From Octopus sinensis (Eukaryota), in the NCBI RefSeq assembly GCF_006345805.1, contig NC_043012.1:3534001-3598000 (forward strand): a DNA stretch of 64,000 nt, read 5' to 3'. Of the stretch, positions 11,901-63,670 are shown piece after piece. The first letter of the stretch is position 1; each line of letters starts with the position of its first letter. The notes under the pieces are model-generated. The model searched no databases, was not told the origin of the DNA, and saw only the letters and a program-made list of their open reading frames with translations. The position numbers and the translations under genes are program-made.

Positions 11901-14900
11901 TTAAAACTCAGGATAGAAAGGGCTGTAACTAAATACCACAAGGCATTTTGCCCAATGTTCCACTAATTTCACCAACTTAATGATTAAGTAATGTGCAAAA
12001 TAATAAATAAAACGTATATACTATATATATCAATCCTCACATCATCATCGTTAACTCCGCTTTCCATGCTAGCATGGGTTGGACGGTTTCCACCATATAT
12101 ACAATGCAGATGTGATAGGTTTGAACCAATGACAAGTGGTCAGGAGTCTGAATTCCTAACTTTTGCAACCATTATAGCTTCATCACACCCAACTAAAATA
12201 TGAGAAAAGTGAAAAGGATACAAACCGGCTTTGTGCGTATGCTCTTGACTAGACCCGCATTACCGGCCTTTGAGAGGGACTTCGATAGGGGTGTTACCCA
12301 CGATGGCATGCAACGGCCACGCTCGGATGGTGTTTTCTTATGTGTCACCGACACAGGTGCTAGACGAGGCTGGCGGACGGCACGCTCGGATGGTGTTTGT
12401 TACGTGCCCTCAGCACGGAGGCCAGTCATTGCGGTACTGGCTACGGTCACGTTCGGATGGTTTTCTATGTGCCACCGGCACTGGTACCACAAGATACAAA
12501 TAGTTTGATTTGATACGATTCGATCTCACTTGCCTCACAGGTCTTCACAAGTGTCACAAGAAGGAAGGTATGCCACAGGTGGACTGACTACGTCCCAGGT
12601 AGGGGCCACGGATTATGGCTTCACTATCTTGCCGGGTCTTCTCACGGCACAGCATACTTCCATAGGCTCGGTCTCTATCATTTCCATGGTGAGACCTAAC
12701 GTCCGAAGGTCGTGCTTCACCACCTCGTCCCAGGTTTTCCTGGGTCTATTAGTAAGCCTTAAAAACAAATAAGGATTTTGTCCTTGCCTCAGTTTTATAG
12801 AGATATAAGCCTATAAATGAGGTAAATTACAATGGAACAAGTACAATATCACAACATATATACAAATGCAGCTGTAGATAAGGTTTGAACCTATGACCAA
12901 GTGGTCAGTAGTCTGCATCCCTAACTTTTGCAACCATATAGCTTCATCACAACCAAACTAAAATATGAGAAAAGTGAAAAGGATACAAACCTGGCTTTGT
13001 GCGTATGCTCCTTGACTAGACCAAGCATTACCAGCCATTTGAGAGGGACTCTGATTAGGGTGTCTGACCAAAGATGGCATTGTTGTGGCAGGAGATACCT
13101 GAGGAAGTGACATGGCAGCAGAGACACTGTGACTGGGGTATTTCATTGTAGACTGAGAATTGTAGCCGTACAAATCTTGTTGGGTAAGGTTACGATTAGT
13201 GCTTAACATACTGCGGCTGTAAACATCGGCTGTAGAATAAGGATCACGGTAATCTGTTTTCACATTAGCTGTTCGTAAACCTAATGAGTCTGTAGGTAGG
13301 CCCCGAGGAGTCGCATATGTATTTATAGTCGGCGTTGGCTCTGAACTTTGATCAGTTGGATTCTGCATAGTTGGGGCTGTAGAATTACCTTGCTGGACAC
13401 TTCTAGAACAAAATTTGGGGATTAAATTCTCAAGAAAATTTGGACTGCAAAATTGAATATGGTAACAATTAAAAAAGCATAAATAAAAATGAAAAATGGT
13501 TTTGTTATATTAATTCAAATAGTACTGAATTAATCCAACTAAAACTTAACTAATTTTAACTCAGATTCCAGACAAACATAACAACTTCATAGGGAATATA
13601 TATACGTACATGTATATATATAAACAAGTTACATTTGAATTAATATGACTTGGCAATATGTATCAAGATTTCCCTGTTTGCATTAGATGCCAGGTAGTCA
13701 CTCTTGGTCCTCTAATTCCTTGACCTAGTGAAACATTGAAGATGTGACAGAAGAAGAAAGGGATGCACCAGCATTAGGCTTGTACACATTTTCTGCTAAG
13801 TAGAGATGACTAACGTGAATGTAAGTGCTTTGCTCAGGGATACAATGCACAACCTAGTCTAAGAATTGAACTCACAGCCATATGATTGTGACCCCAACAC
13901 CCTTCACATATACACTTGATAATCACTGAAAAAATATCAACTGGCTCATGAGGCCCAAGCCCAGTGATGTGTCCCCAACAATTTTTGATAACACCTAAGC
14001 CAGCAATGTAGGTCAGCTAATATATTAGTGTTTGAGCCAACCTGAAATGCCTCTATGTGGTCACTCGATTTGCTAGAAACAATGGTGTGATTTTTTTGGA
14101 TTACACTCCACTGTCTTAGTAAAAAAACATACTGGATAATGTAGTCTTGAATTCCCTGAATATAGAGAAAAAGAAAAACCAGGTTGGTCATGGTAGGAAA
14201 GCTTATACATCTGCTCAGTCAGGGTCGATCTCAGCTCAGGCAAAAACAACCACTAAACTACAACAACCCTACTGTTTTAGAAACAAAGAAGGACACATTG
14301 GATACAACAGTCTTGGACATATAAAAATACACGACATTCAAGGTTAGAACATCTCTGATCAAAGATCTGCTTGATCAAGGCTGACCTGGGGTTAAACAAC
14401 AACATATTAACCTTCAATTGTATACTGACTGACGCAAAGCATAAGCTCTAGGCCTAAGTGTCGAGCCACACTCCACATTATTACTGTTTACTCATTGCAT
14501 AATAAGTGCACAGAGTGGTTTCAGGCCTATTTGAAGTAATATGGCATATCTGATGTCATCATCATCATCATCATTTAACATCCGTTTTCCATGCTAGCAT
14601 GGATTGGATGATTCGACTGGAGTCTGGGAAGCCAGGAGGCTGCACCAGGCTATAGTCTGATCTGGTAGTGTTTCTACAGCTGGATGCCCTTCCTAACGCC
14701 AACCACTCCGTGAGTGTAGTGGGTGCTTTTTACATGCCACTGGCACAGGTGCCAGGGGAGGCTGGCGACGGCCACGATCAGTTGGTGCTTTTTACGTGCC
14801 ACTGGCATGGAAGCCAGTCAAGGCAGTGCTGCCATCGGCCACGTTTGGATGGTGCTTTTTATGTGCCACTGGCATGGGTATCACAACTACAATTTCCATT

Positions 14901-17900
14901 TGATTTTTATTTTGATTATTGATGTACTTGACTCAATAGGTCTCCTCAAGCACAGCCGGTTCAAGGTACTTTTGATGGGCTGGGGCTGCTATGTGAAGCC
15001 GGTGCATGAAACAGCCATGAACTCACGTTGAAGAACCATTATTGGTTTGCTTCTAAGGATTCACTTTGTTACCTTTGTGTCACAGACTGATGAGGGCAAA
15101 ACTACAACAGCAGCAACCGTTACTGCCAATGTCACCCATGATGTCATATTTCTACAGTTTTGAGGTAGATTATTACTAAAGTGCAATTAACACTAATCTT
15201 GTGATTTCATTTACACAATGTCGTAAAATGCACTCATGCCAGTGCCACATAAAATGTGCTAGTGCTGGTGCCACATAATCTGCACTCATATGCCGATACT
15301 ACATATAGTGTATTTGTGCTGGTGCCAAGTAAAAGCATCCATACTGGTAGCACACTGTAAAGTGGTTGGCATTAGGAAGGGCATCCAGCCATAGAAACGA
15401 TGCCAAAACAGACAATTGGAGTCTGATGCAGCTCTCCAACTTGCCAGCTCCTGTCAAATCATTCAACCCATTCCAGCATGGAAAATGGACATTGAATGAT
15501 GATGATGATGATGATGATGATGAATGCTTCAGTCAGTATATTCCCGGACCATCTTTGAATGTAATATGTTTATGTAAATATTTATTGGGTTGTCAGATAA
15601 ATTTCAATTCATTTCCCCCCCCCCCCCATTCATTTTAATCCTTTCTAATGCTATTTGAATTAACATGCAAAATATTTTTATCATAATGTTTTGTGGGATT
15701 TTTGTAGCTCCATTCTTCCTCTACAACTTTTGTTTATCATTTCTGAAACTTTCATAAATTTTATCACTTTTCAGGCATTTGGAAGTAAATAAACAAATTT
15801 ATCTGACAATGGCTGGCTTGGAATTGAAACTACAAATCTCTCTACCTCCACTGTCACAATATCAACATATGTGATATGATTCCTATGTTTCAAAAGTTTA
15901 ATACATTGTCCTAAATGGAGTAAAGATTATTTGCCAACATAACATGGCAGTCCTGGTTTAGGATGAATGTTGCTGTAATTTAGCCCCAGAAGATATCGTC
16001 TCAGGGTCACTATATGACACGATCTGTGTCCTTATATTTTCGAACAAGGGAATCCTAAATATTTCCAAAAGTAAAAATAATTTTGATGTGTTTAAAGTGT
16101 TTTTCTTATTTTCTTATGTTGGTATGAAGCTGAAATGGGTAATCCATTTTCAAAAAGCATTCATGGCTTAAGCAAAACAAAATGAAGTGAAGTGATATTA
16201 TTCTAACTGGAAATAAAAACTGAGATCACTAAAAACTTATCCAGTGTTTAGAAGTGTGCTGATGAGAGAGCCTTTATGTGGCTGCTTGGCATATGAAATA
16301 GCAACCAAATCTCCTTCATATTACACATTCTATCATTGTAATTGGAGAAAGGATACATTGGATAAATGTAGTCTGAGATACACAATGCATGAGAAGATAC
16401 AACAATCATGGTTGAAATGCTTTAGATCATAGATCTACTGAGTTAGGACTGACTTGTGTCTAAACTCAGCACACACACATACATACAAAATACACATATG
16501 CATATTCTTAAGTTTCTGTTACTTACTTAGCAGAACTGTTGTTACAAACTATGTATTCCACTTCGTCTGTGTAAGGGTTTTGGAAACTAAAACTGCTTGT
16601 TCTCAGCCACATCCATTCCCGATTCGATGCTCTAAAACGGTACATAATGGACATCACCTGGCCTTTCAGTTTTAATACTGCAAAATAAACAATAAAGATT
16701 CTTAGACCATTCGGTAATCCACCCCATAGATAGATGACTTAATGCATAAATATATCGGCCCATTGCTTCACCTGCCAAGGTATTGCACCATCACATCAGA
16801 TGTCAAGATCAACAGGGAAATTGACAACAGACCAGAAAAAGTGAACAGTGCATTTGGTAGACTGTACAAATGCATGTGGAAAAACAAACACCCGAAAAAG
16901 GACACCAAGATCAGTGTGTACAGTGCCATAGTCCTTACCACTCTCTTAAATAGCTCAGAGTCATGGGTCACTTATCGTCATCATCTACACTGCAAATGCT
17001 TCTGCCAACACTGCCTCCACACCATTCTCAACATCCACTAGAGTGACTTCATCATCAATGTTGGAGACCTTAATCCGGCAGAAGTTACCAGCATTGAAGC
17101 CATGCTGCTGAAGTCAAAGCTATGCTGGGCAGGGCATGGCATGTCTCCAGGATGAAGGAACATCACCTTTCTAAGACTCTCCACTGGCCATTGCAACAGA
17201 ATAGCATCAAAGAAGCCATACAAGGACTGTTTGTAAAAATCCCTTGATGCATGTCGCATCAACCATCACCAGTGGTCCACCCTAATTGAGGACTGTGATG
17301 CTTGGCACTTCACCATCAGTTAGATAACATAGTCTTAGGCACATGTTTATATATGAAAGAAAAAGAAAAATTACAAGATGAGCAAGGCTGGAAAGCCAGA
17401 AGGCAGGAATCAGAGCTGATCAGAGGTGTGAACAGCAACTAAGTGGCACTCCTTTGGTTGACGTGTGTTCCATTTGATCCAATCCAAAGAACAACCTGCT
17501 TGTGAAATCAATGTACAAGTGGCTGAGCACTCCACAGATACATGTTCCCGTAACATAGTTCTCAGTGAGATTCAGTATGACACAGAATGGGACAAGGCTG
17601 GCCCTCTGAATTACTAGTAAGACTCATTTTTGCCAGCCGAGTAAACTAGGGCAATGTGAAATAAAGTGTCTTGCAGGGACACAATGCCGGGGATTGAACT
17701 TATGACCTTATGATCAAGAGCTGAATACTTGAACCACTAAGCCATGTGCATTCATTGAACAACAACTACAATAACAACAGCAACAATAACAATTAAAATA
17801 AAAGCAAAAGATAGAAACCAACAGCATACCTTGTTCAAAGCTATCTTTCATATGGGCTTGGTCTTCCGGATGATAAAAATCAAATGCAGATTTACCAAGA

Positions 17901-18179: not shown

Positions 18180-21100
18180 CATCATCATCATTTAACGTCC
18201 ACTTTCCATGCTAGCATGTGTTGGACGATTTGACTGAGGTCTGGCGAACCAGATGGCTGCACAAGGCTCCAGTCTTTAGCTGGCAGAGTTTCTACAGCTG
18301 GATGTCCTTCCTAACGCCAATCACTCTAAGAGTGTAGTGTGTACTTTTACATGCCACCGGCACGAGGGCCAGTCAGGCAGTATTGGCAACAGCCACGCTC
18401 AAATGGTGTTTTTTACGTGCCCCCTGCACAGGAGCCAGTCCAGTGGCACTCGCAATGACCTCGCTCAAATGTTTTTCATGTGCCAGTAAGGCGACGCTGG
18501 TAACAATCACGCTCGAATGGTGCTTTTTACATGCCACTGGCATGGAAGCCAGTTAGCTGCTCTGGCAATGATCATGCTCGGATGGTGCTCTTAGCACTCC
18601 ACTAGCACAGATGCCAGTCATCGAATTTTATTTCGATTTCAATTTATATATATATGTGTGTGTAGAAGGTACCTGTGGAAGGGGTAGATCCAGGAAGACA
18701 CAGGACAAAGTTGTGAGAAAAGACCTTTGGACGCTACGCCTCAGTGAGGAAATGACAAGAGGCTGGGAGATGCGGTGATTTGCTGTACTTGATAAGATAT
18801 GTCGGGCTAAGTGAAATCGTTGTCTTCCACACATACAGGCCTGTCCTTTCAGGTGCTGGTGCCACATAAAAAGCACCTGTGCCGGTGCTGCATGAATGCA
18901 CTTGTCCTGATGCTGTGTAAATACACAGCATGTAAAATGCACCCAGTACACTCTGTTAAGTGGTTGGCATTAGGAAGGGCATCCAGCCATAGAAACCATG
19001 CAACAACATACAATTAGAGTCTGGCCAGCTCCATGTTACACTGCCCAACCCATGCCAGCATAGAAAGAGGATGTTAAACAATGATGATGATGACACACAC
19101 ACATACATACATACAATACGATTCTTTAAGTTTTCTACTATCAAATCTACTCACAAGGCTTCCTCTTGTCAAACTGGGATCAGAGTAGAAGGTATTTGCC
19201 TAGGGTACTGTGCAGTAAGATTGAACCTGGCATCAATTTCTTCAACTAAGAGCAGTGCTCCAGCATGGCCGCAGTCAAATGACTGATACAAATAAAAGAG
19301 TGAAAGTATATATATGCAGGCACAATGATTTTGTGATGAAGAAATTTGCTTCACAAGAAATTGATGCCAGAACTTATTCTTTGCAAGCATAGTACTTATT
19401 CTATTGGTCTCTTTTTGCCGAACCGCTAATTTACAGGGATGTAAACATACCAGCATCAGTCATCAAGCGATGGTGGGGGGTCAAACATACACACTGGGCT
19501 TCATACAGTTTCCGTCTATCAAATCCACTCACAAGGCTTTGGTTGGCCCGAGGTTATAGTAGAAGACACTTGCCCATGGTGCCATGCAAAGGGACTGAAC
19601 CTGGAACCATGTGGTTGGTAAGCAAGCTACTTACCACATAGCCACTGCTGCACCTATGTACATATCAAATATACAGTTCCCCCACTCACACTCTCACTCA
19701 TGTGTGTGTTCCTATTCCATGCTAACATGGAAAAATGGGTGTAACGCAATGATGAAAAAGGAAAAGCCAGTCTTGCCAGTAGATTTCAGAAAAGTTCCCT
19801 TCACTTTTTGTGACATGTTAGCAGGCATCTGTTGGTCTTGAGAGACGATGGATCTGAGCCTAGAGAATTTGTGTCAGCTACTGATGGTGGTGTAGCATCT
19901 GTGGCCATACAGGCCCACACAGGAGTGGTAGTCACACATAAAGCGACTGCATTTGAAGAAGCCCTCTACTGGCAAGATTGGCTTTTCCTTTTTCATTATC
20001 ATTGCCTTTCACCCATTTTTCCATGTTGGCATAGAATAGGAACACACACACACATATGAGTGTGAGTGTGAGTGGGGGTAACTGCGTATTGGTGTAATTG
20101 GAAACCACATGGAAGCTCAGTGTGTGCATGCATATGATGATGATGATGATATATATATATGTATATAAACACACACACACAAACACATAAATATACATAT
20201 ATTATTAATAATAATAATACGACAACAAAAGAATGAATGAGACCTTGATATTATGTAAAATAGAGGAATTTATCTATAAACTAACAGCATAGCCCGGCGT
20301 TGCCCGGGTATGTAAGAGCCCCTAGTAGGCAACGACTAATCCCAATCTAGTCCTTTCCCTCTAGGGAACGAAGGCGCACGTGTAGGTTGCAATGTCTTCT
20401 CTTCACTCCCAAATAACTATCAAACAGCTATCGATAATTCAACCCAACCAATTCCTACCAGGAAGAAATTACATTCGAGACTTTACCCCCAATTTGGGGA
20501 AAATTTTCGGTGAAAATTTTTGAAAAATTTTTGGGGAAAATTTTCGGTGTAAATTTTCGAAAAATTTTGGTGTAAAATTTTTGAAAAATTTTTGGGTAAA
20601 ATTTTTGGTGAAAATTTTGGAAAAATTTTTGGGGTGATTTCGGCACCGCTAGGTTTCCATACTTTGTTATTTTGGCACCGCTGGCTTTCCATACATTGTG
20701 ATTTTGGCACCGCTGGCTTTCCATACTTTGTGATTTTGTTACCGCTGGTTTTCCATACTTTGGGGAAAATTTTCGTAAAATTTTTGGGAAAAATTTTTGG
20801 GTAAATTTTTCGAGAAAATTTTCGAAAAATTTTTGATGAAACTGTTCGAAAAATTTTGGGGGAAAATTTTCGAAAAATCAATCCCAGGACTTATTCTTAA
20901 TAAGCTTAGTAATTATTCTATTGGTCTATTTTGCTGAATCACTAAGTTACAGTGACGTAAAGACACCAACGTCAGTGTCAAGCAATGGCAGGGGGGGGGG
21001 CAGAGACAAACACAAACACACAAATACACACACACATATATACATACAAACATACATATATATACACACACGATGGTCATCTTTCAGTTTCTCTCTACCA

Positions 21101-24100: not shown

Positions 24101-27100
24101 GTAGAAACTCTGCCAGATCAGATTGGAGCCTGGTGCAGCCATCTGGTTCGCCAGTCCTCAGTCAAATTGTCCAACCCACGATGATGATGATATTAGAATC
24201 ATTTGACTTTGTGTCAATGGAACCAGCTGGTTATATTGGTTGCCTAGTAACTGTCCTGGAAACTATTAGAAGGTGTACTTCAAACAAAGACATGTTAGCA
24301 ATGGGGTAGAAAGGTTCACTTAACACCCATGAGGTCCCAGGTTTGATTTCACAACACAGTGTTTTTTTTACTATAACCTGGGGTTGACCAATGCCTTGTG
24401 AATGAAATTTGGCAAATAGACACTGGGTGAAAGCCTATCATGTGTGTGTGTGTGTGTGTGTGTGTGTATCATCAGCTTTATCAACATTTTAACATTCACT
24501 TTTTCATGGTTGCACGGGCAGAATACGGACAGAATATACCAGGGCAGATATTCTATATAGCCAGAGGCCCTTCCTACCACCAACCCACACCTGTTCCCAA
24601 GTAAAGTAATTTCTCCCTTTGGCCAGACATGTTTTCATGGAAGATTGAGAATGGCCACCATGTGCATAATGGTGACACTCATTTACAACAAGCATGGGAT
24701 GTCAAGACAAGAAAGCGACACATAGACACAAACAAATATCCATATATGATAAGTTTTTTTCAGTTTCCGTCTACCAAATTTACCAACAAGGTTTTGACAG
24801 TTCAGGGCTATAGCTGAAGACATTTGCTCAAGGTACTATGCAGAGGGACTGAACCCAGAACTAAGTGGTTCAGAAGCAAAGTTCTTAATCAGACAGCCCT
24901 GCCTATATGTCTGTATGTCAGGGTGTACCTGGCTCAAACAGTGCTAGGATCGATATGATTGACTAAGATCCCTTTAAAGTGATAGACGGATAATTCATCG
25001 ACAAACAGTTGGCCAACAGACAACTTACAGATACTCCATGATCGATACTTCCAGCCAATTGTCCAATCGGCGAATTGTCTGCACACGTTTAAAGCAACGC
25101 CCGACTCGGGCTGCAGTCTAATGATTGAACACAGGAAAAGAATATGAAGAAAGAAAAAAATGTGGGGAAAAGAAAAAATAAAGATACTTTCTCAACTTAC
25201 ATTGATGACCTTCTTTCTTAACAGTTCCAGCTGAAAAATAATTTATAGAAAAAAACCAATGAGTAATTAGAACTAATGGCAGTGGTGATCAGTTAATTAA
25301 TGATTTCAATTTTTTGCCACAAGGGCAGCTTGGGGGAGGGGATTAAGTCGATTACATTGACCCCAGTGTTTCACTGGTACTTAATTTATCAACCCCGAAA
25401 GGATGAAAGGTAGAGCCGACCGTGGCAGAATTTGAACTCAGAACATAGCGACGGGCAAAATACCGCTAAGCAATTTGTCCAGCATGCTAATGAATCTGCC
25501 AGCTTGTCACCTTATATTATACAGTTAATTAATAGGCTATAACAATATGAGTTAACGATAGAGTCTCTCTATCAACATTAGACTTGATAGAAATAGCAAT
25601 TAAATCCTTTTTAAATTAGACACTACTGCATTAGGTTACCCAATCAGGGCTGACTTGAGGCTAAACAACTACTATTGCTGCTGCTACTACTACTGCTACT
25701 ACAACTACTACTAATACTACCACTACTACTTGCATTATGAGCTAAAAACAGCAACCAAATTTCTCTCATATCACTCTATCAGCCCTGCTGTCTTTTAAAA
25801 CAGAGACTAAACATTGGATAGTGATTTCCTAGTTTCAACGTCATACAAAATAAGAAGGGATGGTCACCACACAAACATCTTTGATTGGAGTTGAAGGCAA
25901 ACAGCAAAATCTGGTGCATGCCACTACTTGCACTAACGTTGCAATATGTTTAGAATAAGACAAAGTGATACAATTTCTGAAATTAAACACACATTGGATA
26001 ACATAGTTCTAGATATACTATGTATGAAAAATAAAGATGAAATGGTCACATTTGGAACAAATTTGATCACAGAACTGCTTGATCAAATTAACCTAGGGCT
26101 AAAGAAGAAGAAGAAGAAGAACAACAACAAATGTTACTGTTGCTGCTGCTGTTATTATTACTACCCACACACACATTATGTTATGCCTCAATCAAATTCG
26201 ATGACTGGCATCTGTGCTAGTGGAGTGCTAAGAGCACCACCTGAGTGTGATCGTTGCCAGAGCAGCAGACTGGCTTCTGTGCCGGTGGCACATAAAAGGC
26301 ACCATTCGAGCGTGATTGTTACCAGCATCGCCTTACTGGCACTTGTGCCGGTGGCACGTGAAAAAACATTCGAGCGAGGTCGTTGCCAGTGCCACTGGAC
26401 TGGCCCTCGTGCCAGTGGCATGTAAAAGCACCCACTACACTCTCAGAGTGGTTGGCGTTAGGAAGGGCATCCAGCAGTAGAAACTCTGCCAGATCAGATT
26501 GGAGTCTGGTGCAGCCATCTCGTTTGCCAGTCGTCAGTCAAACTGTCCAACCCATGCTAGCATGGAAAGCGGACGTTAAACAATGATGATGATGAGTCAG
26601 TGATCATCAGACTGCTATAATTCAGTGAGTGTATATATTCAGAAAGCACTGTTCCTATATACAATCAGTGTATATAATAAGAAAGTACCATTTATATATA
26701 TATATAAAATATTTTCTACAGTGTATACATAGTATACTAGCAAGTCAATGTGAGACCTTTATGTCTTCACTTAACCTGCTAGAAATAGCAGCCAAATCTC
26801 CCTTGGATTATATCTTACCACCTTCTTAAAAAAAAAGAGGGCCAAACTATACAATGTAGTCCTAGATATACTATGTCTGCAAAGAGGTGGAATGGACATG
26901 GCTGGAATGCCTTCAATCAGAGGCCTTCTAAAGCTCACGGTAATCCCCAGATAACTATATAGTCCAGAAATATATATATATTCAGAATGTATGACCGTTA
27001 CCTCAAAATATTTCTTTTTATTTTCCATGAGCATATAAACATAGCACACCTTCAAATAAACATGCGATATATATTTTACATAATGGAGTACAAGTTTATC

Positions 27101-34800: not shown

Positions 34801-37273
34801 AACACGCCAGCATCGGTTGTCAAGCGATGTTGGGGGGACAAACACAGACACACAAACACACACATATATATACACGACGGGCTTCTTTCAGTTTCCGTCT
34901 ACCAAATCCACTCACAAGGCTTTGGTCGGCCCGAGGCTATAGTAGAAGACACTTGCCCAAGGTGCCACGCAGTGGGATGAACCCGGAACCATATGATTCG
35001 TAAGCATGCTACTTACCACACAGCCACTCCTACACCTTATTGATTTTTATTTTATAATTCTTGTTAAATTTTCTTTTCCATGTTAACCTGGGCCAGAATG
35101 GTTTTGTAATACTCATGCGAGTATAATTGGGACAAGATATTTTCTTTAACATTGACTATAATTAGTGAGATTGGATGTAACTGATGAGATCTACAACCAT
35201 GACCACCATCAAAAAGAAGCAATGGATATTTCCTCTATTCTCTTTCTGATGAAGAGCCATGCTTGAAATATCAAAATTCCTCTTTTTCCCATTTTAAACT
35301 GAGCCTCAACCTAATACATTCACTGTGTATATTCTTGTTGTTTTGTTGTTTTTATTTTTATTTTTGCATTTATTTTTAATTTGCCTACACACACACACAC
35401 ACACACACACAGAAAAGCCACAGTACTGTCCATCCCTTCACAATCATTCATTACAATGATGACTAACCACAAAAGTGGTGATTTTTGTACACAAAAAAGA
35501 AAAAAAAAACAATGATGAAGGATTTTTAAAAATGCACAAATAAATGAAATTCAACAACAAAATAAATTTTTAAGAAGAGCAATGGGATATATGTCTTTTT
35601 TTTTAGGTTTTTTTTTTTGCTATTTGACATTTTAGTTTAAAGATTTACTGTATCATATTTTGGTCTTAATCATTTTCAGGCTATCATAATATCACTGGTG
35701 TTACTAACAAAACACATATTGAGATTAATAAAAAGAAAAAGAAATATAAAGTTCAGGTGTTCTATCTCTACTTTGCAGTAATGTTTGTAAACCTATAGGT
35801 TCATGGGGAGACTGTTTTAAACTTTGTATCTGCATATATTGTTTTCTCCACGATCACACGAATAAGAATTACATTTTTGCCCACTAATGAAATAATTATA
35901 AGTTACAGAGTGTTCCTGCTGTGTATAGATGTATCTATTCATGTCTGACTGAACAAGGCCATTAGAAGTGTTTCTCTGCAAAAGAAGCTATGCATTAATA
36001 AGACAAGAATAATTGCCCTCTGGCTTGTAGGCTGAACTCCTAATGATTTAACCAGCTGTGACTGTGTCTATGCGCTTTCTGTATTTTTCTGCTTGACTAT
36101 TCATAATCAGTGGCTTGCATCAATTAATGATTTATCCAATTAACTTCATGGCACGAAGAGATGTGAGTTGTTATGCTTACACCTATCCCAAGGAAGTTAG
36201 TAAACATCTGAAGTGAAACAGCCACAGTAAAAAATTGAAACTAGTCACTGGAAACTCATCTTCTACTTCATAGTGCTTACCTCTGTGTGTATGTGTGTGT
36301 GTGTATGTATGTGCGTGTGTGTGTGTTGTGTGTGGTGTGTATGCGTGCACGTGTGAACTTTCATATCTGTTTTACCAATGGTTGGTAGTGTCTTGCTACT
36401 AGATGTAATCTTTCATTATCTGGTGTACTCTCTTTCTCATTCTCTCTTGCCAGGTGGGCAAGCCATGTCTTCACATCTTCAGCAAGACACCTACTCCTCT
36501 CCTTCTATCATATCTATTGTAGTTTATTTCTCCAGTGTAAACGCCACCCAGCCGAGGGGGTCTCATCTTGTGCGTACTTGGTGACTTCAACAGTGCTGAT
36601 GCCACATAAGAATGCATGCCATACACTCTGTTAAGTGGTTGACCCGTTAGGAAGGTAGAAACTCTGCCAGAGCAGACACAGAACCTAGCACAGCACTCTG
36701 GCTTCTAGGTTCTTATCAAACCATTCAACCCATGCCAGCATGGGAAAAGAGACGATAAATGATGATGATGATGATGATGATGATGCTGATGTAACTTGAA
36801 GGAGATGGCTGTAGCTGATTGAATCAATTCAGTTTAAGACTGGTACTTATATCTAGGGAGAGGGCTGAAAGGTGAGGTTGACTTTGGCATGATTTACAAC
36901 TAGAACATAAGTAAAAGCTAACAGAAGACCTGCAATCTACCATTTCTGACACACACACACATGCACACACACACGTACCATCCCTTTACAAAAAAATGTT
37001 AATAACGATAATGTGTAACATGGAGATTATGTAGTTTGAAACGGAGTGAGACTAGGGCTAAATAGTGTCCTGGAGAACCACCTGAAGCTTTTTAAAACAA
37101 GAAGCATAGGTCTCTTTAACAGCATAAATAGTTGTTAAAAGCCAGTGAAATTTATTTTCATTTCATCTTCAGACAAACTAATAGATCTGGAGATTTACCT
37201 GGCAAACCTTTCTTTGTCAATTGCATCTTGGGAAGTGGAGAAAGAACCGTGCTGGCTGTCATCATCGTCAGAA
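8719..37273 (-). CDS. ARNT: ARNT / HIF-1beta (tango-like) bHLH-PAS transcription factor, spliced CDS, 5'-incomplete (14 exons traced)
   Basis: The hand-spliced exons give [60 protein letters not shown] (ARNT bHLH), then PAS-A (AADGFLFVV...SDWFG...VHPDD), PAS-B ([18 protein letters not shown]...YHPED), PAC ([22 protein letters not shown]) and a C-terminus [14 protein letters not shown]. All junctions are AG/GT with matching phases. Confidence 0.97.
9976..10014 (-). CDS. ARNT: Candidate ARNT 39-nt symmetric microexon [13 protein letters not shown]
   Basis: Strong ttttggtttccag acceptor and gtaagt donor, phase 1-1, no stops. Not needed for frame, so inclusion is inferred. Confidence 0.65.
10140..10544 (+). 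mobile_element. SINE family A, full length
   Basis: Same head, body and tail as 963-1365. Confidence 0.88.
11209..11272 (-). CDS. ARNT: ARNT exon (64 nt) [21 protein letters not shown]
   Basis: cattctag acceptor, CCAG|gtaagc donor, phase 0-1 fits both neighbours. Confidence 0.82.
12035..12765 (-). mobile_element. RTE family D element interrupted by duplicated ARNT sequence
   Basis: (CAT)n tail at 12035; [20 protein letters not shown]-coding segment at about 12660-12760. Other minus-strand copies lie near 9665-9900, 14560-15030, 18100-18640 and 44540-44830. Confidence 0.75.
12991..13402 (-). CDS. ARNT: ARNT S/T/Q-rich C-terminal exon (412 nt)
   Basis: Open frame joins the previous exon in phase (AA|A); ttctag acceptor; CAG|gtttgt donor gives phase 0, matching the next exon. 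Confidence 0.85.
16527..16677 (-). CDS. ARNT: ARNT PAC exon (151 nt) [50 protein letters not shown]
   Basis: Hand translation (absent from the ORF track); canonical ARNT PAC motif; cag acceptor, gtaagt donor. Confidence 0.97.
16765..17320 (+). mobile_element. RTE (BovB-like) LINE ORF2 C-terminal fragment
   Basis: Translates to [62 protein letters not shown]. Confidence 0.85.
17830..17936 (-). CDS. ARNT: ARNT PAS-B exon (107 nt) [35 protein letters not shown]
   Basis: [10 protein letters not shown]...HPED PAS-B motif; AG/GT boundaries. Confidence 0.97.
18670..19092 (+). mobile_element. RTE LINE 3' end with (GAT)n tail, family D
   Basis: Begins with a decayed GRGRPRKTWD.VVRKDL-coding segment and ends gttaaacaatgatgatgat. 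Plus-strand copies also lie near 15230-15520, 23940-24190, 26180-26595, 30160-30510, 55760-56063 and 57985-58390. Confidence 0.75.
19240..19650 (-). mobile_element. SINE family A, rearranged
   Basis: Reverse complement of the family A body and head. A plus-strand tail fragment lies at about 19250-19300. Confidence 0.7.
20280..20880 (+). mobile_element. Helitron/Helentron-like non-autonomous element carrying an internal satellite
   Basis: Starts ctaacagcatagcccggcgttgcccggg, a terminus style typical of invertebrate non-autonomous Helitrons. Contains an A/T-tract array (gaaaatttttgg) and four 32-bp repeats at 20642-20760. The other terminus was not recognised. Confidence 0.5.
21288..21468 (-). 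CDS. ARNT: ARNT exon (181 nt) ...[13 protein letters not shown]...[18 protein letters not shown]
   Basis: End of PAS-A and start of PAS-B; tag acceptor, gtaag donor. Confidence 0.96.
23629..23829 (-). CDS. ARNT: ARNT exon (201 nt) [20 protein letters not shown]...[16 protein letters not shown]
   Basis: Conserved CMGSRR.FICRM and VH.TGYIK.WPP motifs; AG/GT boundaries. Confidence 0.96.
25201..25230 (-). CDS. ARNT: ARNT 30-nt microexon [10 protein letters not shown]
   Basis: Continues DLK|TGTVKKEG as in ARNT orthologues; cag acceptor, gtaag donor; phase 1-1. Confidence 0.93.
27175..27292 (-). CDS. ARNT: ARNT PAS-A exon (118 nt) [39 protein letters not shown]
   Basis: Hand translation (absent from the ORF track) gives the ARNT HPDD...REQLS...GRILDLK motif; tag acceptor, gtgagt donor. 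Confidence 0.96.
28870..28962 (-). CDS. ARNT: ARNT PAS-A exon (93 nt) [31 protein letters not shown]
   Basis: PAS-A start motif; phase 0-0; AG/GT boundaries. Confidence 0.97.
29340..29720 (+). mobile_element. Degenerate RTE LINE 3' fragment
   Basis: [24 protein letters not shown] resembles the RTE C-terminal GHV.RM...P.G.R.RGRP region. Confidence 0.65.
29905..29984 (-). CDS. ARNT: ARNT exon (80 nt) [27 protein letters not shown]
   Basis: Matches the conserved ARNT linker [17 protein letters not shown]; ccag acceptor, gtcagt donor. Confidence 0.97.
30871..31028 (-). CDS. ARNT: ARNT bHLH exon (158 nt)
   Basis: [14 protein letters not shown]...[11 protein letters not shown]; cag acceptor, gtaag donor. 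Confidence 0.98.
34651..35036 (-). mobile_element. SINE family A, full length
   Basis: Reverse complement of the 10140-10544 element. Confidence 0.88.
35243..35275 (+). ncRNA. Minimal type I hammerhead motif (Penelope-like)
   Basis: TTT-CTGATGA-A-GAGC(CAT)GCTT-GAAA-TAT-C-AAA: intact core, 4-bp stem II, palindromic ATAT stem III, 3-bp stem I. Confidence 0.55.
37199..37273 (-). CDS. ARNT: ARNT exon, 75 nt, phase 2-2 ([25 protein letters not shown])
   Basis: Polypyrimidine tract plus tag acceptor and gtaaat donor. DKERFAR immediately precedes the basic region in ARNT proteins. Confidence 0.92.
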
Positions 37274-37659
37274 CTAGCAAGCAAAAAAAAAAAAATAACA
37301 ATAATAAATAAAAATAACAATGATGATAAAAAAAAGAGAAAACAAGTAGAAGACAAAAATAAGCAAAGGTTAATTTTACTGGCTGAAAATAACAAACAAT
37401 TAAAGCATTTACAGTAATAAGGCACAAGTCATTACATCATGACCAACAGATGTAGTAAAGTATAATAAAGTACACAATGTTGTATGACTAATGAATGCAG
37501 TAAAATATTTATCATATGACCGACGGATGATGTAAGGCTCTTCATGGCTGTAGGAAACATGTTAGAAACAGTAAAAGTAATCATCACATAACTAACAGAT
37601 GTACAAAAGTAGGAACCACACAACTAATAAACATTGTAAAAAAATTTGGTTTATAATTT

Positions 37660-43015: not shown

Positions 43016-44919
43016 GAGTATATGTTTGTGTGTCTGTGTTTGTACCCCAATATCACTTGACAACCGATGCTGGTGCCTCTATGTCCCCATAACTTAGCAG
43101 TTTGGCAAAAGAGACTGATAGAATAAGTACTAGGTTTACAAAGTCCTGAGGTTGATTTGCCTGACTAAAGGTGATGCTCCAGCATGACCACAGTCAAATG
43201 ACTGAAACAAGTAAAAAAATAAAAGAATATGTGGTGTGTGTGTGTTTGTGCATGTATGTACATATGTATGTATGCCTTCTTGTCTTGACATTATGTGATA
43301 GTCGTAAATGAGTGTCACTGTTATACAGGTGGTGTTACTCTTTCCAGTCTTCCATGAAAACATGTCTGGTCATGGGGAAATATTGCCTTGCTTTAGAAAG
43401 ATAATATTTAGCAACAGGGAGAGCATCCAGCTATTGAAAATCTCCTCACTGAATTCTGTTTGAACCCATGCAAGTATGGAAAAGTGGACATTCAAAACAA
43501 GTTCAAAATCCTGCTGAAACTGACAATGTTTCTCAACCTTCTGGGTTCAGGTTAATAAAACAAGTACCTGTAATATACTGGTCCCTATCTAATAAATCGT
43601 CAAGTCAAAGTCAATATATAGTATTCTGAAACAAAACAATAACCCCCCATAGAGGTGTTCATTATTTACGACTGTTTGGCATTTAAATGTTATGACATTT
43701 TAATAGTATTTACACTTCAATTCAAGCTTAAAATAGGAAATAAAATTTTTTTTAAACATTACCAAACTCTACCATCCTAAAATTTCTTTCAACACAAGAT
43801 TAATATCTCACTTTTTATCTTTTACTTGTTTCAGTCATTAGACTGCAGTTATGCTGGGACACCACCAACTTAAAGAACTTTTAGTCGAATGAATCAACCC
43901 CCGGACTTATTTTTATAAAGCATGGTACATATTCTATTGGTCTCTTTTGCTGAACTGCTAAATTATAGTAACATAAACACACACAGAGGCTGTCAAGTGG
44001 TGGTGGGGGACAAACACAGAAACACAGGCTTTGGTTGGCCTGAGACTTGGCCAAGGTATCATGTAGTGGGATTGAACTTGGAACCAGGTACTTGTGAAGT
44101 GAACTTCTTACCACACAGCTATGCCAGTGCATATATATATATATATATATTATTGAAGTAGATAAATGAATTATCTTATTACGGATAATTCAAATGATAA
44201 CTGATACCTGGGTAGCAAAAATCACAACAGAAAAGGCACTGTTGAGGTTACGACCATGGGGCCTAAAATCTGTGCCTTAGTGCGGAAATTTGAAGTTTTA
44301 TATATTTAGTGTAGGAAGAAATGGAGCTGAACGAAGATTTAACAAAATTCCTTTTTATTATTTCCTACATATGTTTCAAAGGCTGCAAAGTCCCTAATTC
44401 GGATTGAATAAGGAGTCCATTTTGCAGCCTTCTCTTCAGGAAAATCCAGGAACTTAATTCTCCAACAAAATGCACAGCAAGCTTTTCGACAAAACGCTCA
44501 CGAGGAGCCCATGGAATAAATGGCACATATATCATCATCATCATCATCATCATCATTTAATGTCTGCTTTTCATGCTGGCATTGGTTGGACAGTTTGACA
44601 GAAGCTGGCCAGACAGGAGCTTGCCACAGACTACTGTGTCTATTTTGGCAGGGTTTTTGTGGGTGGATGCCCTTCCTAACATCCAGCAGAGTGAACTGAG
44701 TGCTTTATACATGGTACAAGCACAGGCAAGGTCAGTTTTGGTAGGGTTTTTACAGCTGGATGCTCTTCCAAACACCAACCACTTTACAGTGTGGACTGGA
44801 TGCTTTTTATGTGGCATCAGGACTGGCAGGGTCACCAAGTACCTTGCAAGACAAGGATCCTTCGAGAGGGGAGGGACAGATGATTAACGGTTATAGTGAG
44901 ACAGAGAGACGTGGTTACT

Positions 44920-44963
<44 letters not shown>

Positions 44964-45147
44964 ATGCAACCCAAATATATATATATATATGTATATATTT
45001 ATTTATATCCAGGGCAAGTGAGTAAATACACAGGCCTAGCCACATGCTGAAGGAAGATGCCAAATGACTCTAAACTACTTTAAATATCACAATAAACACA
45101 CGCCGAACTCGGGGGAAATAAGCGCAAAAGATTCATGAAATGGTTCA

Positions 45148-45208
45148 ATTACATATCAATTGATTTCAGGATTACAGGGAAATTCCCCTTTTCCATCATC
45201 AGTGTAAT
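45148..45208 (-). ncRNA. Type I hammerhead ribozyme motif in a Penelope-like fragment
   Basis: Minus strand reads ATTACA-CTGATGA-[TGGAAAAGGGGAATTTCCCTGTAATCCT]-GAAA-TCAATTGAT-A-TGTAAT. Stem I is 6 bp, the core is intact, and stem III is palindromic (ATCAATTGAT) with an AUA triplet. Confidence 0.75.
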
Positions 45209-46486
45209 ATAACCCATATATATATATATATATATGCCAGGCTTCTTTCAGTTTCCATCTACCAAATTCACTCACAAGGCTTTGGTTGGTCCAAGGTAAC
45301 AGCAGTAGACACTTGCCCAAGGTGCTATGCAGAGGGACCAAAACTTGAAACCATGTAGCCGGGAAGCAAACTTCTTACCACAGAGCCATGCTTAATGTTT
45401 ACAAAGAAAAACTCAATGAATACAATTCAGGGTATAAACGGAAATTTAATAATTTAAACTTTTTTTGTTATTTTTTTTTATTTGATAACAATTGAAAATG
45501 ACTTCCAGTCAAAAACAGGAAGACAGTGTATGCATATTCACATTTACATATCAATGTGTGAGGTGGTTTTAGAGTAACTAAGGAAATTATTCTTTTGTTA
45601 GCACAGCAGAAGAAAGAATTGAATAACCAAGGAGCTATAAAAAGGAAAATAAAGAAAAAAAAAATACTTCTTAAATATATTACATACTATCACTGGGCTA
45701 TGAGGAGAAATTCAATGTGGTTGTGCAATCTGCTGGAAATAGCAGCAAAAAAAGATCTCCTTCAAAAATCACACTCTATTGTTTTAAAAGAGAAAGAGTG
45801 AGTGCATTGGATAATGTGATTTTAGATGTGCTATACTTGAAAAACAAAGACAAAGTGGTCACAGATGGATCGTCCTTGATCATAGGTTCGCTTGATCAGA
45901 GTTGACTTGGGGCTAAAAGTCAACAATGAATATCTACAAGGATTAGTGGTAGTGGGTGATGATGATGATGATGATGATGGTGATGATAGTGTTACTGTAT
46001 GCGCAAGTGTAGGCCTGTGCATGTAAATTGTGGTTATGCAAAGCATTCAGATACATTGAACATAAATAAAAAAATCTACAAGCTGGTCCCTTTCCACATA
46101 TTCAACAAAAGAGAAATGGAGAATGGCCGATGGGGAAGGGAGAGTTATTAAATGAAAAAGCAACTTGTTTGATGATATTGTTTTACTTACAAGGTGGGGT
46201 GGGGAGGAATCAAAGGCATGTCTTGTTTCCTACGATAACAATTGAAAACAAATCAAAGTTGGAAACAGGAAAAACGTACAAAATATCCATATTTACAAGG
46301 GATGGGGGTTTTTTAGAATAAATTGGAAACTAAAGAAATTATTCTTTTGTTAGCATTACAGAAGGAAGAACTAGAGAAATATGGAGTTATAGATGAGTGT
46401 TTATGAGTATATACACACATGTATGTATGTATAAACACAACCTCTGAAATCTGCATTGGATTGTTCACTATTATATTTCTAAGAAT

Positions 46487-48669: not shown

Positions 48670-49031
48670 AACTTTTCAACAAAGTCAGTTAGCTGATTAA
48701 TATGGATGTTTAAGATAACAGAACACTAGGCTGTTTGACATTGTACTTGTTTAGTAATTAATACCTTACGGTTTTGAGTTAAAATGACTCCAGATTAAAT
48801 TGAATAAGTAGCTGTAACATATATATATATATATATATATATTAAGGTATGTAGAAAAATACAACATGGACAAGAACGTATAACTCTAGAAGACGACACA
48901 ATAAACATGGACAGGACATTCGAACCCCTCAGTCTTCAGTCAAGAACCGGATCATCGTATCGTATTTCGGCTGATATATATATATATATATATATAATAT
49001 ATATATATACATATATATATATATACATATA

Positions 49032-49755
49032 CAAAATATTACATTATATAAGGGCTTAGTAAAATAAATTACTTTGCCACATACTGAACTCATTAGAAAT
49101 AGCAGCTAAAGAAATTTCTTCAGCTATTTCTAATACTTAAAGAAGATCTCTCTCAGATAGTGTTTGCCTAACCAACTCACAAAAGTATGGGGGAAAAAAA
49201 AAAAAAACATTAAAAAATCAAGTGCAAAGGTTATTTGAGAACGTACGTTTCTAGATTAGTCAATTCGACATTTCTTTCTTCAGCTCAGAATTCCTTGAAT
49301 CGGATTTGGGAACACTGAAAGTCGGGAGCATACCCTTTCGGCTTCTAATCACCTCTAGAATTCTGCTCGAACTAAAAGTGCTATCAAATTCGAATATGCA
49401 AGCGAAGAATTTCTGCTCTCCCTTCCACCAGCGTGGGTTAAAATTGACAAACACCATGTATTAACGGTGAAAACCGCAGCATTAGCAGAGAGAGATGAAT
49501 TATAATTTCAACAATTGAGGGTAAAATTAATTAATTATTAATCATTTCACCAAGTATTCAGTATGTAAGGGGACCATTAAAGAAATTCTTTAGCTGCTAT
49601 TTCTAATGAGTTCAGTATGTGGCAAAGTAATTATTTTACTAAGCCCTTATATATAATGTAATATTTTGAATTCGCCTATAATGGTCCCTTTACATACTGA
49701 ATACTTGGTGAAATTGATTAATAATTAATTAATTTACCCTCAATTGTTGAAATAT
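49032..49755. mobile_element. Element with nested inverted repeats (A-body-B-A'-B'), possibly Penelope-derived
   Basis: 49032-49120 is inverted at 49580-49670 and 49506-49578 is inverted at 49681-49752. Flanked by (TA)n. Confidence 0.6.
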
Positions 49756-49756
49756 A

Positions 49757-49810
<54 letters not shown>

Positions 49811-50103: not shown

Positions 50104-50640
50104 CTTTTACTTGTTTCAGTCATTTGGCTGTGGCCATGCTGGAGCACCGCGTTTAGTCAAGCAAATTGACCCCCAGGACTTATTCTTTGTAAGCCTAGTA
50201 CTTATTCTATCGGTCTCTATTGCCGAACCGCTAAGTTAAGGGTATATATATATATATAGATATATATATATATATAGTTAATCCAAACATGAAAGCACAA
50301 AAAAAAACACAACAACGCAAGGACGTGGAACAAATATAGTATTATTGGACGCTCAGGAAAGAAGGGAAGAAGGAGGGTTTAACGTTTCGAGCAGAGCTCT
50401 TCGTCGGAAACATAGGAGAAGGAAAGATCCAGAGAAGGGAAGACAGAGGAAAAAAAAATCGCCAACAGTACACACGCGGTACAACGGGCTTCTCTCAGTT
50501 TCCATCTACCAAATCGCACTCTCAAGGCTTTGGTCGGCCCGAGTCTGTAGTAGAAGACACTTGCCCAAAGTGCCATGATGTGAGACTGAACCTAGAACCA
50601 TGTGGTTGGTAAGCAAGCTACTTACCACACAGCCACTCCT
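50104..50640 (-). mobile_element. SINE family A interrupted by a hammerhead-bearing insert
   Basis: Tail at 50104-50243, (TA)n plus a foreign insert at about 50244-50483, head at 50484-50640. Confidence 0.8.
50377..50411 (-). ncRNA. Minimal type I hammerhead motif with a core U-to-C substitution
   Basis: Minus strand reads GTTT-CCGACGA-A-GAGC(TCT)GCTC-GAAACGT-T-AAAC. Stems I-III are formed but CUGA has become CCGA. Confidence 0.6.
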
Positions 50641-56112: not shown

Positions 56113-58429
56113 CACCACTGCTCTTCTTGGTTGCATCAACACATATAGGCAGCACTGGATTAACTATTAAGCAAAGTAGGCATGTGAAGGGAGGAGGGCA
56201 CCACAAAAATGGTAAGTGGTTTATGGCACAAGAGAAATCACTTTAAACTTGCTAAAATAATTGATTTAGAGGCTACAAACAACATGGCTAAACATAGCCA
56301 TATCAATAAGATCCAAGAAGAACAGAAGAGAAACAACACTGAGAAGGTCAAATTACATTTTATCAGTTGTAGTTATAGAAGAACCTGAAACTATAAAGTA
56401 CATTTTTCTCAGTGTTATGAACTCCACAACGACTTATTTAATTGCTATAAAATGGCAAAAAAAAAAAAAAACCCATTCCCTCGTTGGCTATATGAATATA
56501 ATGAAAATATACAGGCAAGAACTTTATCCAGAGCTAAATTATTTGAAGTCGAAACAATTACACCGATAAGCAACATTTGTGAAATGCAAGAGGTGGGTTG
56601 ATGGTTGTAATCTTATTCCCAAGTGTGAAGGGGGAACAAATAATGCTACATGAGTATTCTCCTATAACAAGGATGACACATATGACAACAGAAACAGATC
56701 AGACATCTACAGTTACCATTTTATGTTACCTCACTGTGAGGCTGACTATAGCACACACTAAATGTCAATGATTTATAGCAGCAGGAACTGCAATAAATGT
56801 ATTTATGAGCTGGAAGAGACAAGAATATAAACAACTAGTGAAGTGTTTCAAGAAAAGATTATTTTGCTTTTAAAGTAACCACTATAAAACAAACCATTGG
56901 GCTGATAAGAGACCTGCCAAGCTTGATGCTGACAATGATGAATGAAATTAGGAGTTGAGTGGGGGCGATTATTTACAGCAAAGCAATGTTCTTTGGAGAT
57001 ACAAATCTGTAAACAAAAGCAAAACTTAGCAGGACAATGCCATAATGGATTTGGGAAATGGGAAGAGTCTGCTATTTGGCACTGATGCATATCACATGCA
57101 AACAAATAACTACACTCATATGCACCCTCTAACCCAAATGAAAAATAAAATGTTGGGAGAGGCCTATGCTTCCTTCCAAACCATGTTGCCTCATGTTCAT
57201 TCTTACAATGTGGCACCTTGGGCAAGTGTCTTCTCCAGGCTGATCAAAGCCATGAGTGGTTCAGGTAGACAAAAGCTGAAAAAAGCTCATACCTCTCTCT
57301 CTCTGTTCTGGGTTCAGTCCTACTATGTGGTACCTTGAGGAAGTGTCTTCTGCTATAACCACAGGCTGACCAAAACCTTATGAGTAGATTTAGTTGATGA
57401 AAACTGAAGGAGCCACACACACACACCTTTGTGTCTATGTTTTCCCACAAACACCACTTGACAACTAGTATTGATGTGTTTACATCCCCATGACTAAGCA
57501 GTTCAGCAAAAGAATCTGATAGAATAAGTACCAGTTTTAAATAAAAAAAAATATGTACTGGGGTTGATTCATTCAACTAAAATTCTTCAAGACAGTGCCC
57601 CAGCATGGCTGCAGTCAGATGACGGAAACAAGTAAAAGATAAAAGATGTGTTTGTGTTTGACCCCTACCACTGCTTGACAATGAGTGTTCGTTTACGTCC
57701 CCATAACTTTGTAGTTCAGTGAAAGTGAGTGATAGAATAAATATCAGGCTTAAAAAACAAAAAACAAAGTACTGGTGTTGATTTGTTCAACTAAACCCTT
57801 CAAAGAGGGGTCCCAGTATGGCCACAGTCCAATGACTGAAACCAAAAAAAAACGACTACACATACACACACACATAACTAAGAGGCATCAGATGTTGTGT
57901 GCAAGATAGAAGCCTGCACTGCTTTGGTCATGTAATGCGTATGGAAGAGGACAGTTGCGTATAGAAGTGCTGAGCTCTAATTGTGGAGGGTACCTGTGGA
58001 AGGAGTAGACCCAGGAAGACATGGGATGAAGTGAGAAACGATCTTCAGATGCTGGGCTTCACTGAGGAAATCACAAGGAACTGAGACATGTGGTGATTTG
58101 CCATTCTTATAAGACATGTCAAGCTAAGTAAAATCGCTGTCTTCCACACATACAAGCTTGTCCTTTCAGGTGCTGGAGCTGCATTAAAAGCACCCGTGCC
58201 AGTGCTGCATAGGTGCACCTGTGCTAGTGGCATGTAAAAAGCAGCCAGCACACTCTGGGCATCCAGCCATAGATAGAAACGATGCCACCGCAGACAATTG
58301 GAGTCTGGACAGCTCCCAGCAGCCTGCTCCATGTCAAACTGTCCAACCCATGCCAACATGGGAAGTGGACGTTAAACAATGATGATGATCATGACTAATA
58401 ACTAAAAGAAATAAAGAATATATTTATGT

Positions 58430-58826
58430 GTAGTAAGTATCTTGCTTACCAACAACATGGTTCCGGGTTCAGTCCCACTGCGTGGCACCTTGGGCAAGTG
58501 TCTTCTACTATAGCCTCGGGCCGACCAAAGCCTTGTGAGTGGATTTGGTAGGCGGAAACTGAAAGAAGCCTGTCGTATATATGTATGTATATATATATGT
58601 ATGTGTGCGTGTATGTTTGTGTGTCTGTGTTTTTCCTCCTAGCATTGCTTGACAACCGATGCTGGTGTGTTTATGTCCCCGTCACTTAGCGGTTTGGCAA
58701 GGGAGATCGATAGAATAAGTACTGGGCTTACAAAAGAATAAGTCCCGGGGTTGAGTTGCTCGATTAAAGGCGGTGCTCCAGCATGGCCGCAGTCAAATGA
58801 CTGAAACAAGTAAAAGAGTAAAAGAG
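58430..58826 (+). mobile_element. SINE family A
   Basis: Near-identical to 10140-10544; 5' end slightly truncated. Confidence 0.85.
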
Positions 58827-63505: not shown

Positions 63506-63670
63506 TCAGTGGCTGTGTGGTAAGTAGCTTGCTTACCCACCACATAGTTCCAGGTTCAGTCCCACTGTGTGGTACCTTGGGCAAGTGTCTTCTACTATAG
63601 CCTCGGGCCGACCAAAGCCTTGTGAGTGGATTTGGTAGACGGAAACTGAAAGAAGACCGTCGTATATATG

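Follow-up and report, generated by a model that had tools for sequence, protein, structure and literature searches.

The 64-kb window considered here (the whole stretch of DNA that was analysed) contains the gene for the bHLH-PAS protein ARNT on its − strand. With an approximate human ARNT sequence as the tblastn query, used as a lead, exons were located from 37269 down to 8722, and the identity of the gene as bHLH-PAS ARNT was confirmed by a protein database search, in which the best identities were 78–92% and the closest proteins were lophotrochozoan. A hammerhead ribozyme motif, HHR1, lies 7.9 kb upstream of the most 5′ ARNT exon found, on the same strand; given that the ARNT exons are on the − strand, HHR1 is in the sense orientation. 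It is carried by a 219-nt insert, E1, within a tRNA-type SINE. Two further motifs, HHR2 and HHR3, lie on the same strand, the three falling within 5.3 kb, and each of the three is followed by (TA)n on its 3′ side. The motif, its insert, the repeat that flanks the insert, the surrounding SINE, and both of the neighbouring motifs can all be read directly from the DNA. Coordinates are collected in Table 1.

Table 1. Features of the ARNT locus and of the three hammerhead-bearing inserts. Positions are those of the 64-kb window.
Feature	Position	Strand	Basis or remark
Most 5′ ARNT coding exon found by homology	37275–37198	−	Polypyrimidine tract and AG before, GT after
ARNT coding exons	31030–30869, 30003–29899, ~28980–28870, 27292–27173, 25228–25190	−	
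ARNT coding exons	23830–23636, 21427–21287, ~17960–17831, 16678–16526, 8928–8722	−	
HHR1, type I hammerhead motif	45148–45208	−	Sequence reading, descriptor scan, shuffle controls
HHR1 helix I	45208–45203 with 45153–45148	−	AUUACA/UGUAAU, 6 bp
HHR1 core (C3–A9)	45202–45196	−	CUGAUGA
HHR1 helix II region	45195–45168	−	
HHR1 G12–A15.1	45167–45164	−	GAAA
HHR1 helix III	45163–45156	−	UCAAUUGA, perfect palindrome
HHR1 U16.1	45155	−	
HHR1 H17	45154	−	A
E1, 219-nt insert carrying HHR1	44992–45210	−	BLAST within window, alignment, sequence reading
Upstream flanking repeat of E1	45211–45236	−	C(AT)10GGGTT
Downstream flanking repeat of E1	44968–44991	−	C(AT)8TTGGGTT
tRNA-type SINE head; its internal (TA)n received E1	45237–45400	−	BLAST
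HHR2, second hammerhead-like motif	49236–49287	−	Descriptor scan
E2, element around HHR2	49050–49758	− (unit), + (inverted copy)	Unit 49582–49050 (~530 nt) and adjoining inverted partial copy
HHR3, minimal PLE-type hammerhead	50377–50411	−	Descriptor scan, one core mismatch allowed
E3, HHR3 insert (~200–230 nt)	Roughly 50277–50478	−	Boundaries approximate, 5′ ambiguous

Read on the − strand from 45208, the 5′ half of HHR1 is AUUACA / CUGAUGA / U-GG-AAAA-GGGGAAUUUCCC, and the 3′ half, which follows GGGGAAUUUCCC and runs down to 45148, is UGUAAU-CC-U / GAAA / UCAAUUGA / U / A^ / UGUAAU, where the caret marks the predicted cut, 45154/45153. Every base of the conserved type I core (C3 U4 G5 A6 N7 G8 A9...G12 A13 A14) is present, as is the A15.1–U16.1 pair (A at 45164, U at 45155); H17 is not G, and helix I is open and 6 bp long, with a possible distal extension of GGUU (45214–45211) on AACC (45145–45142) across a 2 × 2 internal loop. 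HHR1 also has two marks of the minimal hammerheads of Penelope-like elements (PLEs), an additional base after A9 (U at 45195) and a helix III that is a perfect palindrome, UCAAUUGA. What it lacks is the G10.1–C11.1 pair that closes helix II beside A9 and G12. A U follows A9 and a U precedes G12, so that 10.1/11.1 is U·U; the first Watson-Crick pairs, GG/CC, come one step further in and give way to a 4 × 6 internal loop. The tip of helix II (45177–45188, − strand) is GGGGAAUUUCCC, a near-palindrome for which a two-strand fold prefers intermolecular pairing, and this pairing would compete with the double-hammerhead fold.

The first-pass annotation of this DNA had described a near-intact type I hammerhead on the ARNT sense strand at 45148–45208, with a cut between 45154 and 45153, an insert of about 200 nt between (TA)n tracts, and a non-canonical stem II closing pair that left activity uncertain. 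Our reading recovers all of the core bases, both helices I and III, and the same cut coordinates, and the two tracts, (TA)10 at 45235–45216 and (TA)n at about 45000–44975, are about 216 nt apart. The non-canonical pair is the U·U at 10.1/11.1, and we likewise judge activity to be doubtful. The description as near-intact is generous. Position 10.1/11.1 has the U·U mismatch, helix II is broken after 2 bp, the window contains no second copy with which to form the dimer that such an architecture requires, and the thermodynamic model favours an inactive fold by 4.5 kcal/mol.

The 5′ end of E1 falls two bases before helix I of HHR1. The insert has a GC content of 36% and an A/T-rich 3′ end (..GGATATAAATAAATATATA). 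By BLAST and alignment, it is single-copy in the 64-kb window, and the tandem, head-to-tail repetition of units that characterizes retrozymes was not found there. The sequences on its two sides form a direct repeat of 24–26 nt with the appearance of a target-site duplication in which the microsatellite has slipped, since GGGTT, which is not microsatellite sequence, is common to both flanks. The flanking (TA)n itself could partly be microsatellite noise and not true target duplication. Upstream of E1 is the head of a tRNA-type SINE, for which BLAST gives about 30 full or partial matches at 70–95% identity elsewhere in the window. Copies lie, for example, at 972–1119, 10150–10299, 19497–19649, 34880–35026, 58429–58572, and 63510–63655, and this abundant family looks like the common octopus SINE. 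Canonical copies in the window consist of the head, then (TA)n, then (GT)n, and then a conserved tail. In the copy at HHR1, the head and (TA)n are followed by E1, and the canonical tail is not resumed after it. In the window, heads of this family occur with tails of more than one type. An exact-protein look-up of three open reading frames overlapping the hammerhead inserts returned no record.

The window contains other repeats as well. A second interspersed family, internally duplicated and with (GAT)n at its end, is found at 44500–44840 (− strand), immediately downstream of the HHR1 locus, and in about 20 other places (e.g. 15372–15521, 14556–14749, and 26419–26595). Two short tandem arrays, with units like ttttcgaaaattttcc and aaaatcacaaagtatggaaagccagcggtgcc, lie downstream of a SINE copy at about 20630–20900 (− strand).

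HHR2 reads UGAG/CUGAAGA/A-AGA-AAU-GUCGAAUUGAC-UAA-UCU-A/GAAA/CGUACG/U/U^/CUCA. Its core is intact, its helix III is the palindrome CGUACG, its predicted cut is at 49240/49239, and its helix I could be extended distally by AAGG/CCUU. It has the same oddity as HHR1, namely a symmetric mismatch beside the core (here A·A) followed by a short helix, an internal loop, and a distal hairpin. The element around it, E2, consists of a unit and an adjoining inverted partial copy: the segment 49120–49050 is repeated at 49580–49648 with 97% identity, and the segment 49582–49501 is repeated at 49676–49758 with 94% identity. Tracts of (TA)n are found on both sides of E2, at about 48975–49050 and at 49765–49806. 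The order of the two blocks is permuted in the + strand copy, which implies that E2 was copied from a head-to-tail or circular template.

HHR3 has the sequence GUUU/CCGACGA/A-GAGC-UCU-GCUC/GAAA/CG/U/U^/AAAC. One core base is changed (U4 to C), an A is bulged after A9, the G10.1–C11.1 pair is present, helix II has 4 bp, and helix III is a minimal palindrome; apart from the one core base, this is a near-textbook PLE minimal hammerhead. The predicted cut is at 50381/50380. Its insert, E3, is inside another copy of the tRNA-type SINE; a (TA)n tract comes next, at about 50276–50243, after which the canonical SINE tail resumes. Aligned with one another, E1, E2, and E3 have no sequence in common beyond the hammerhead motif, and a partner carrying the helix III palindrome of HHR1 was not found among the descriptor matches in the window, including those of the search that allowed one core mismatch. 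Of the three hammerhead-bearing inserts, two are located within SINE copies, and (TA)n borders every one of them, which indicates that the (TA)n tracts of this abundant SINE serve as landing pads.

The close association of E1 with a SINE head also invites a different explanation. The 219 nt could be a 3′ module native to a SINE subfamily that consists of a tRNA head, (TA)n, and a hammerhead-bearing tail and that has borrowed a PLE-like tail for its mobilisation. Such an element would be comparable to the hammerhead-bearing SINE-like elements of schistosomes, and it would account for the fact that the SINE head and E1 adjoin in the same orientation without return of the canonical tail; heads of the same family joined to different tails in the window point the same way. 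However, no SINE copy elsewhere in the window has the module, and the direct repeat on either side of E1 closes with GGGTT, which is not microsatellite sequence. Moreover, the SINE tail clearly resumes after E3, indicating that hammerhead-bearing elements do insert into the tRNA-type SINE. We therefore regard a native SINE module as unlikely.

How often such a motif would arise by chance was estimated with a descriptor consisting of CUGANGA, 6–45 nt, GAAA, 0–14 nt, U, and a non-G base, with a helix I of at least 4 bp. The real 64-kb window contains two matches, HHR1 and HHR2, both on the − strand. In 400 dinucleotide-preserving shuffles of the window, there were 0.65 matches per window and 0.0975 when helix I was at least 6 bp, and none of the 400 shuffled windows combined a helix I of at least 4 bp with a palindromic helix III of at least 4 nt. 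By extrapolation (0.0975 × ~1/15 × 1/256 for an 8-nt palindrome), a motif like HHR1 is expected about 3e-5 times per 64-kb window, or roughly once by chance in a genome of 2–3 Gb. At about one chance instance per few-Gb genome, the motif by itself is strong evidence without being conclusive, and it is the context and not the motif alone that decides for HHR1. A second shuffle run gave 0.013 intact-core matches per shuffled window versus 2 in the real window, and 0.033 relaxed matches with a helix II of at least 4 bp versus 1 in the real window. Metagenome contigs were also scanned with a pattern in which the core and helix III were fixed (CTGATGA-N20-36-GAAATCAATTGATA). Helix I was 0–2 bp long in 34 of the 35 matches and 4 bp long in the remaining one, so that with none of the 35 reaching 5 bp, no relatives were found in these public contigs. 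The 35 are chance matches and serve as an empirical control.

The first-pass annotation had proposed an Infernal search with the Rfam hammerhead models. HHR1 was matched by none of these covariance models (Hammerhead_1, _3, _II, HH9, and HH10): cmscan at the gathering score matched no hammerhead family anywhere in the window, and at E ≤ 10 no hammerhead match was obtained in 44900–45400 (501 nt), in the 86 nt around the motif, or in the regions of HHR2 and HHR3. Because the near-textbook HHR3 is missed too, this negative result weighs little against HHR1. The Rfam hammerhead models are evidently insensitive to the PLE-type class, and descriptor searches are consequently needed to annotate its members. 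An origin of HHR1 from short consensus boxes that came together by chance in AT-rich repeat DNA would agree with the missing Rfam match, with the extrapolated expectation for a few-Gb genome, and with the ease with which a fixed core and helix III turned up 35 times in metagenomes. It would leave unexplained the absence of comparable motifs from all 400 shuffles, the short helix I of every metagenome match, the flanking duplication of E1 in a target type known from the literature, and the occurrence within 5.3 kb of two more motifs with independent sequences and the same helices. Chance assembly is thus extremely improbable.

Whether HHR1 could still cleave is a separate question. In a hammerhead, G10.1 helps to bind the metal ion of the catalytic site. 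In HHR1, that position belongs to a U·U mismatch, and helix II has just two Watson-Crick pairs before the large 4 × 6 internal loop. Activity is doubtful because of this mismatch together with a short, interrupted helix II, and also because helix III of the monomer would have just 3 bp capped by an AAUU loop, with no partner palindrome in the window. A further reason is that the minimum-energy fold of HHR1 pairs U4–U7 with A15.1–A15.4 and thereby sequesters core bases; the predicted energy of the hammerhead fold is −14.8 kcal/mol versus −19.3 kcal/mol for the minimum-energy fold, a penalty of 4.5 kcal/mol. Finally, poor cleavage in vitro has been described for PLE-type hammerheads, dimers included (Cervera & de la Pena 2014, PMC4209133). 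We infer that HHR1 is most likely inert or, at best, very slow. The mismatch beside the core could nevertheless be a tolerated feature of a lineage and not damage, as HHR2 has the same design with A·A, although two motifs cannot decide the matter. It is highly improbable that HHR1 and HHR2 represent an undescribed functional variant in which a symmetric N·N mismatch replaces G10.1–C11.1 and helix II is in two parts. In such a variant, of a probably cephalopod lineage, the internal loop of helix II would contact the internal loop of helix I, and sense-oriented copies within a 5′ intron of ARNT would cleave its pre-mRNA.

The relation of HHR1 to ARNT depends on where transcription of the gene begins. 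The exon at 37275–37198 starts at a splice acceptor, and at least one ARNT exon must therefore lie further upstream. With the N-termini of relatives as queries, tblastn placed no upstream exon in the window, and the CpG profile shows no promoter-like CpG island upstream of the ARNT exons. The sole shared tblastn match, 51153–51109, was rejected as a candidate exon; it runs into a stop codon and has no splice donor. The earlier suggestion that HHR1 is inside the ARNT pre-mRNA is accordingly borne out as to the sense strand and the existence of at least one exon upstream of 37275, whereas no such exon has been placed beyond 45208.

If HHR1 is intronic, it might be an active sense-strand ribozyme that cleaves ARNT pre-mRNA co-transcriptionally and lowers or tunes its output, as has been proposed for amniotes. 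Its complete set of core bases, A at H17, and 6-bp helix I with a possible 4-bp distal extension are consistent with this idea, as are its position on the ARNT strand with at least one exon upstream of 37275 and the recurrence of the unusual helix II design in HHR2, which suggests tolerance. Several observations weigh more heavily. The U·U stands where G10.1–C11.1 is highly conserved (PMC4209133), and a 3-bp monomer helix III belongs to a design reported to need a dimer (PMC4209133, PMC7229834), for which the window offers no partner palindrome. In the predicted fold, core bases are sequestered, none of the Rfam hammerhead models gives a match, those of the intronic families HH9 and HH10 included, and PLE minimal hammerheads cleave poorly in vitro (PMC4209133). 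An active intronic ribozyme is therefore very unlikely, and HHR1 is probably not an active regulator of ARNT and probably of no matter for ARNT biology. Even an intronic position would be unexceptional, as intronic copies of hammerhead-bearing retroelements are commonplace (bioRxiv 10.64898/2026.07.22.740005).

The published properties of mobile hammerheads provide a framework for these observations. Metazoan type I hammerheads have a 6-bp helix I and a 1–2-bp helix III with a palindromic loop and act as dimers. In those of PLEs, a base separates positions 9 and 10.1, helix II is long, helix III is palindromic, and the G10.1–C11.1 pair is highly conserved, as it is in canonical hammerheads (PMC4209133). 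PLE hammerheads are extremely variable in sequence and mostly occur as single motifs from truncated elements (PMC4209133), and the lack of sequence common to E1, E2, and E3 fits this variability. In canonical PLEs, the hammerhead is found close to the 3′ end, inside pseudo-LTRs (pLTRs); their insertions are tandem or inverted, and (TA)n is a target that they prefer (Craig et al. 2021, PMC8557442). The non-LTR retrozymes, which are short, non-coding, and made of tandem units with type I hammerheads, derive from PLE pLTRs (PMC7229834; bioRxiv 10.64898/2026.07.22.740005). Retrozyme monomers are common and dispersed, and about 43% of them are intronic in Xenopus (Li et al. 2026, bioRxiv 10.64898/2026.07.22.740005). 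In Octopus vulgaris, 30 Penelope families have been recently active, and SINEs make up 11.6% of the genome (PMC13282606).

Taken against this background, HHR1 is in our view the hammerhead of a PLE or of a short non-coding derivative (a "non-LTR retrozyme"), present as a solitary 219-nt copy, a reading to which we assign a probability of roughly 0.78. The link to Penelope-like elements and retrozymes drawn in the first-pass annotation is strengthened by the short palindromic helix III and the extra base after A9, and the context adds to it, with a direct repeat that includes a (TA)n target and two more (TA)n-associated motifs nearby on the same strand. The insertion signature of PLEs recurs in all three inserts, as a flanking repeat containing (TA)n in E1, as an inverted partial copy with (TA)n at its borders in E2, and as a (TA)n tract after E3. 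No reverse transcriptase or GIY-YIG domain was detected by Pfam in the 10 scanned of the 19 open reading frames of at least 110 amino acids in the window, so the link to PLEs rests on architecture and published patterns and not on homology to a named element.

We propose that PLE machinery was the probable agent of insertion. The RNA of an element with its ribozyme about 150 nt from the 3′ end would have been reverse-transcribed at a nick in the (TA)n of an older SINE. Insertion would have left the 24–26-nt target duplication, and the copy would have been truncated at its 5′ end so as to start almost exactly at the ribozyme. A tandem origin is likewise plausible: in the parent element, tandem ribozymes would form a double hammerhead through their palindromic helix III arms and cut multimeric transcripts to unit length. 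The lone HHR1, left with no partner, with U·U instead of G–C beside its core and an interrupted helix II, would then be a passenger with respect to ARNT. What is new here is most likely a further relic of an established class, the PLE/retrozyme-type hammerhead. It adds an invertebrate, apparently cephalopod, case to the established pattern in which PLEs and their non-coding derivatives carry most of the type I hammerheads of animals as cargo.

The intronic hammerheads of amniotes, the subject of work by de la Pena together with Garcia-Robles in 2010, are reportedly stable monomers that are kept at orthologous sites and match Rfam models of their own. Like them (Hammerhead_HH9, RF02275; Hammerhead_HH10, RF02277), HHR1 is on the sense strand and possibly within a protein-coding pre-mRNA. 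Unlike them, it matches no Rfam model and is embedded in the insert of a transposon, where an intronic position is putative. HHR1 resembles PLE minimal hammerheads (PMC4209133) in being of type I topology, in carrying one base more after A9, and in combining an extended helix II with a helix III that is short and palindromic and so implies a dimer; it too is a solitary motif in a truncated copy, and variability between copies is high. HHR1 differs from that group in that helix II has one U too many on its 3′ side, such that U·U stands in place of the conserved G10.1–C11.1 that would directly abut G12, and in that helix II is broken by a 4 × 6 loop; moreover, no PLE reading frame or second pLTR was found nearby. 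With the Neptune and Naiad PLEs (PMC8557442), it shares a setting, as these elements prefer (TA)n targets and the HHR1 insert adjoins (TA)n.

Metazoan non-LTR retrozymes (PMC7229834) are built of head-to-tail units of about 170–400 bp, each with a type I hammerhead. E1, in contrast, is not tandemly repeated in the window, and its copy does not start at the ribozyme cut site; among the three inserts, a tandem or circular template is indirectly indicated for E2 alone, through the permuted order of its blocks. Monomeric, dispersed retrozyme copies are known, and many of them are intronic. E1 matches such copies in being about 220 nt long, low in GC, non-coding, and equipped with one type I hammerhead.
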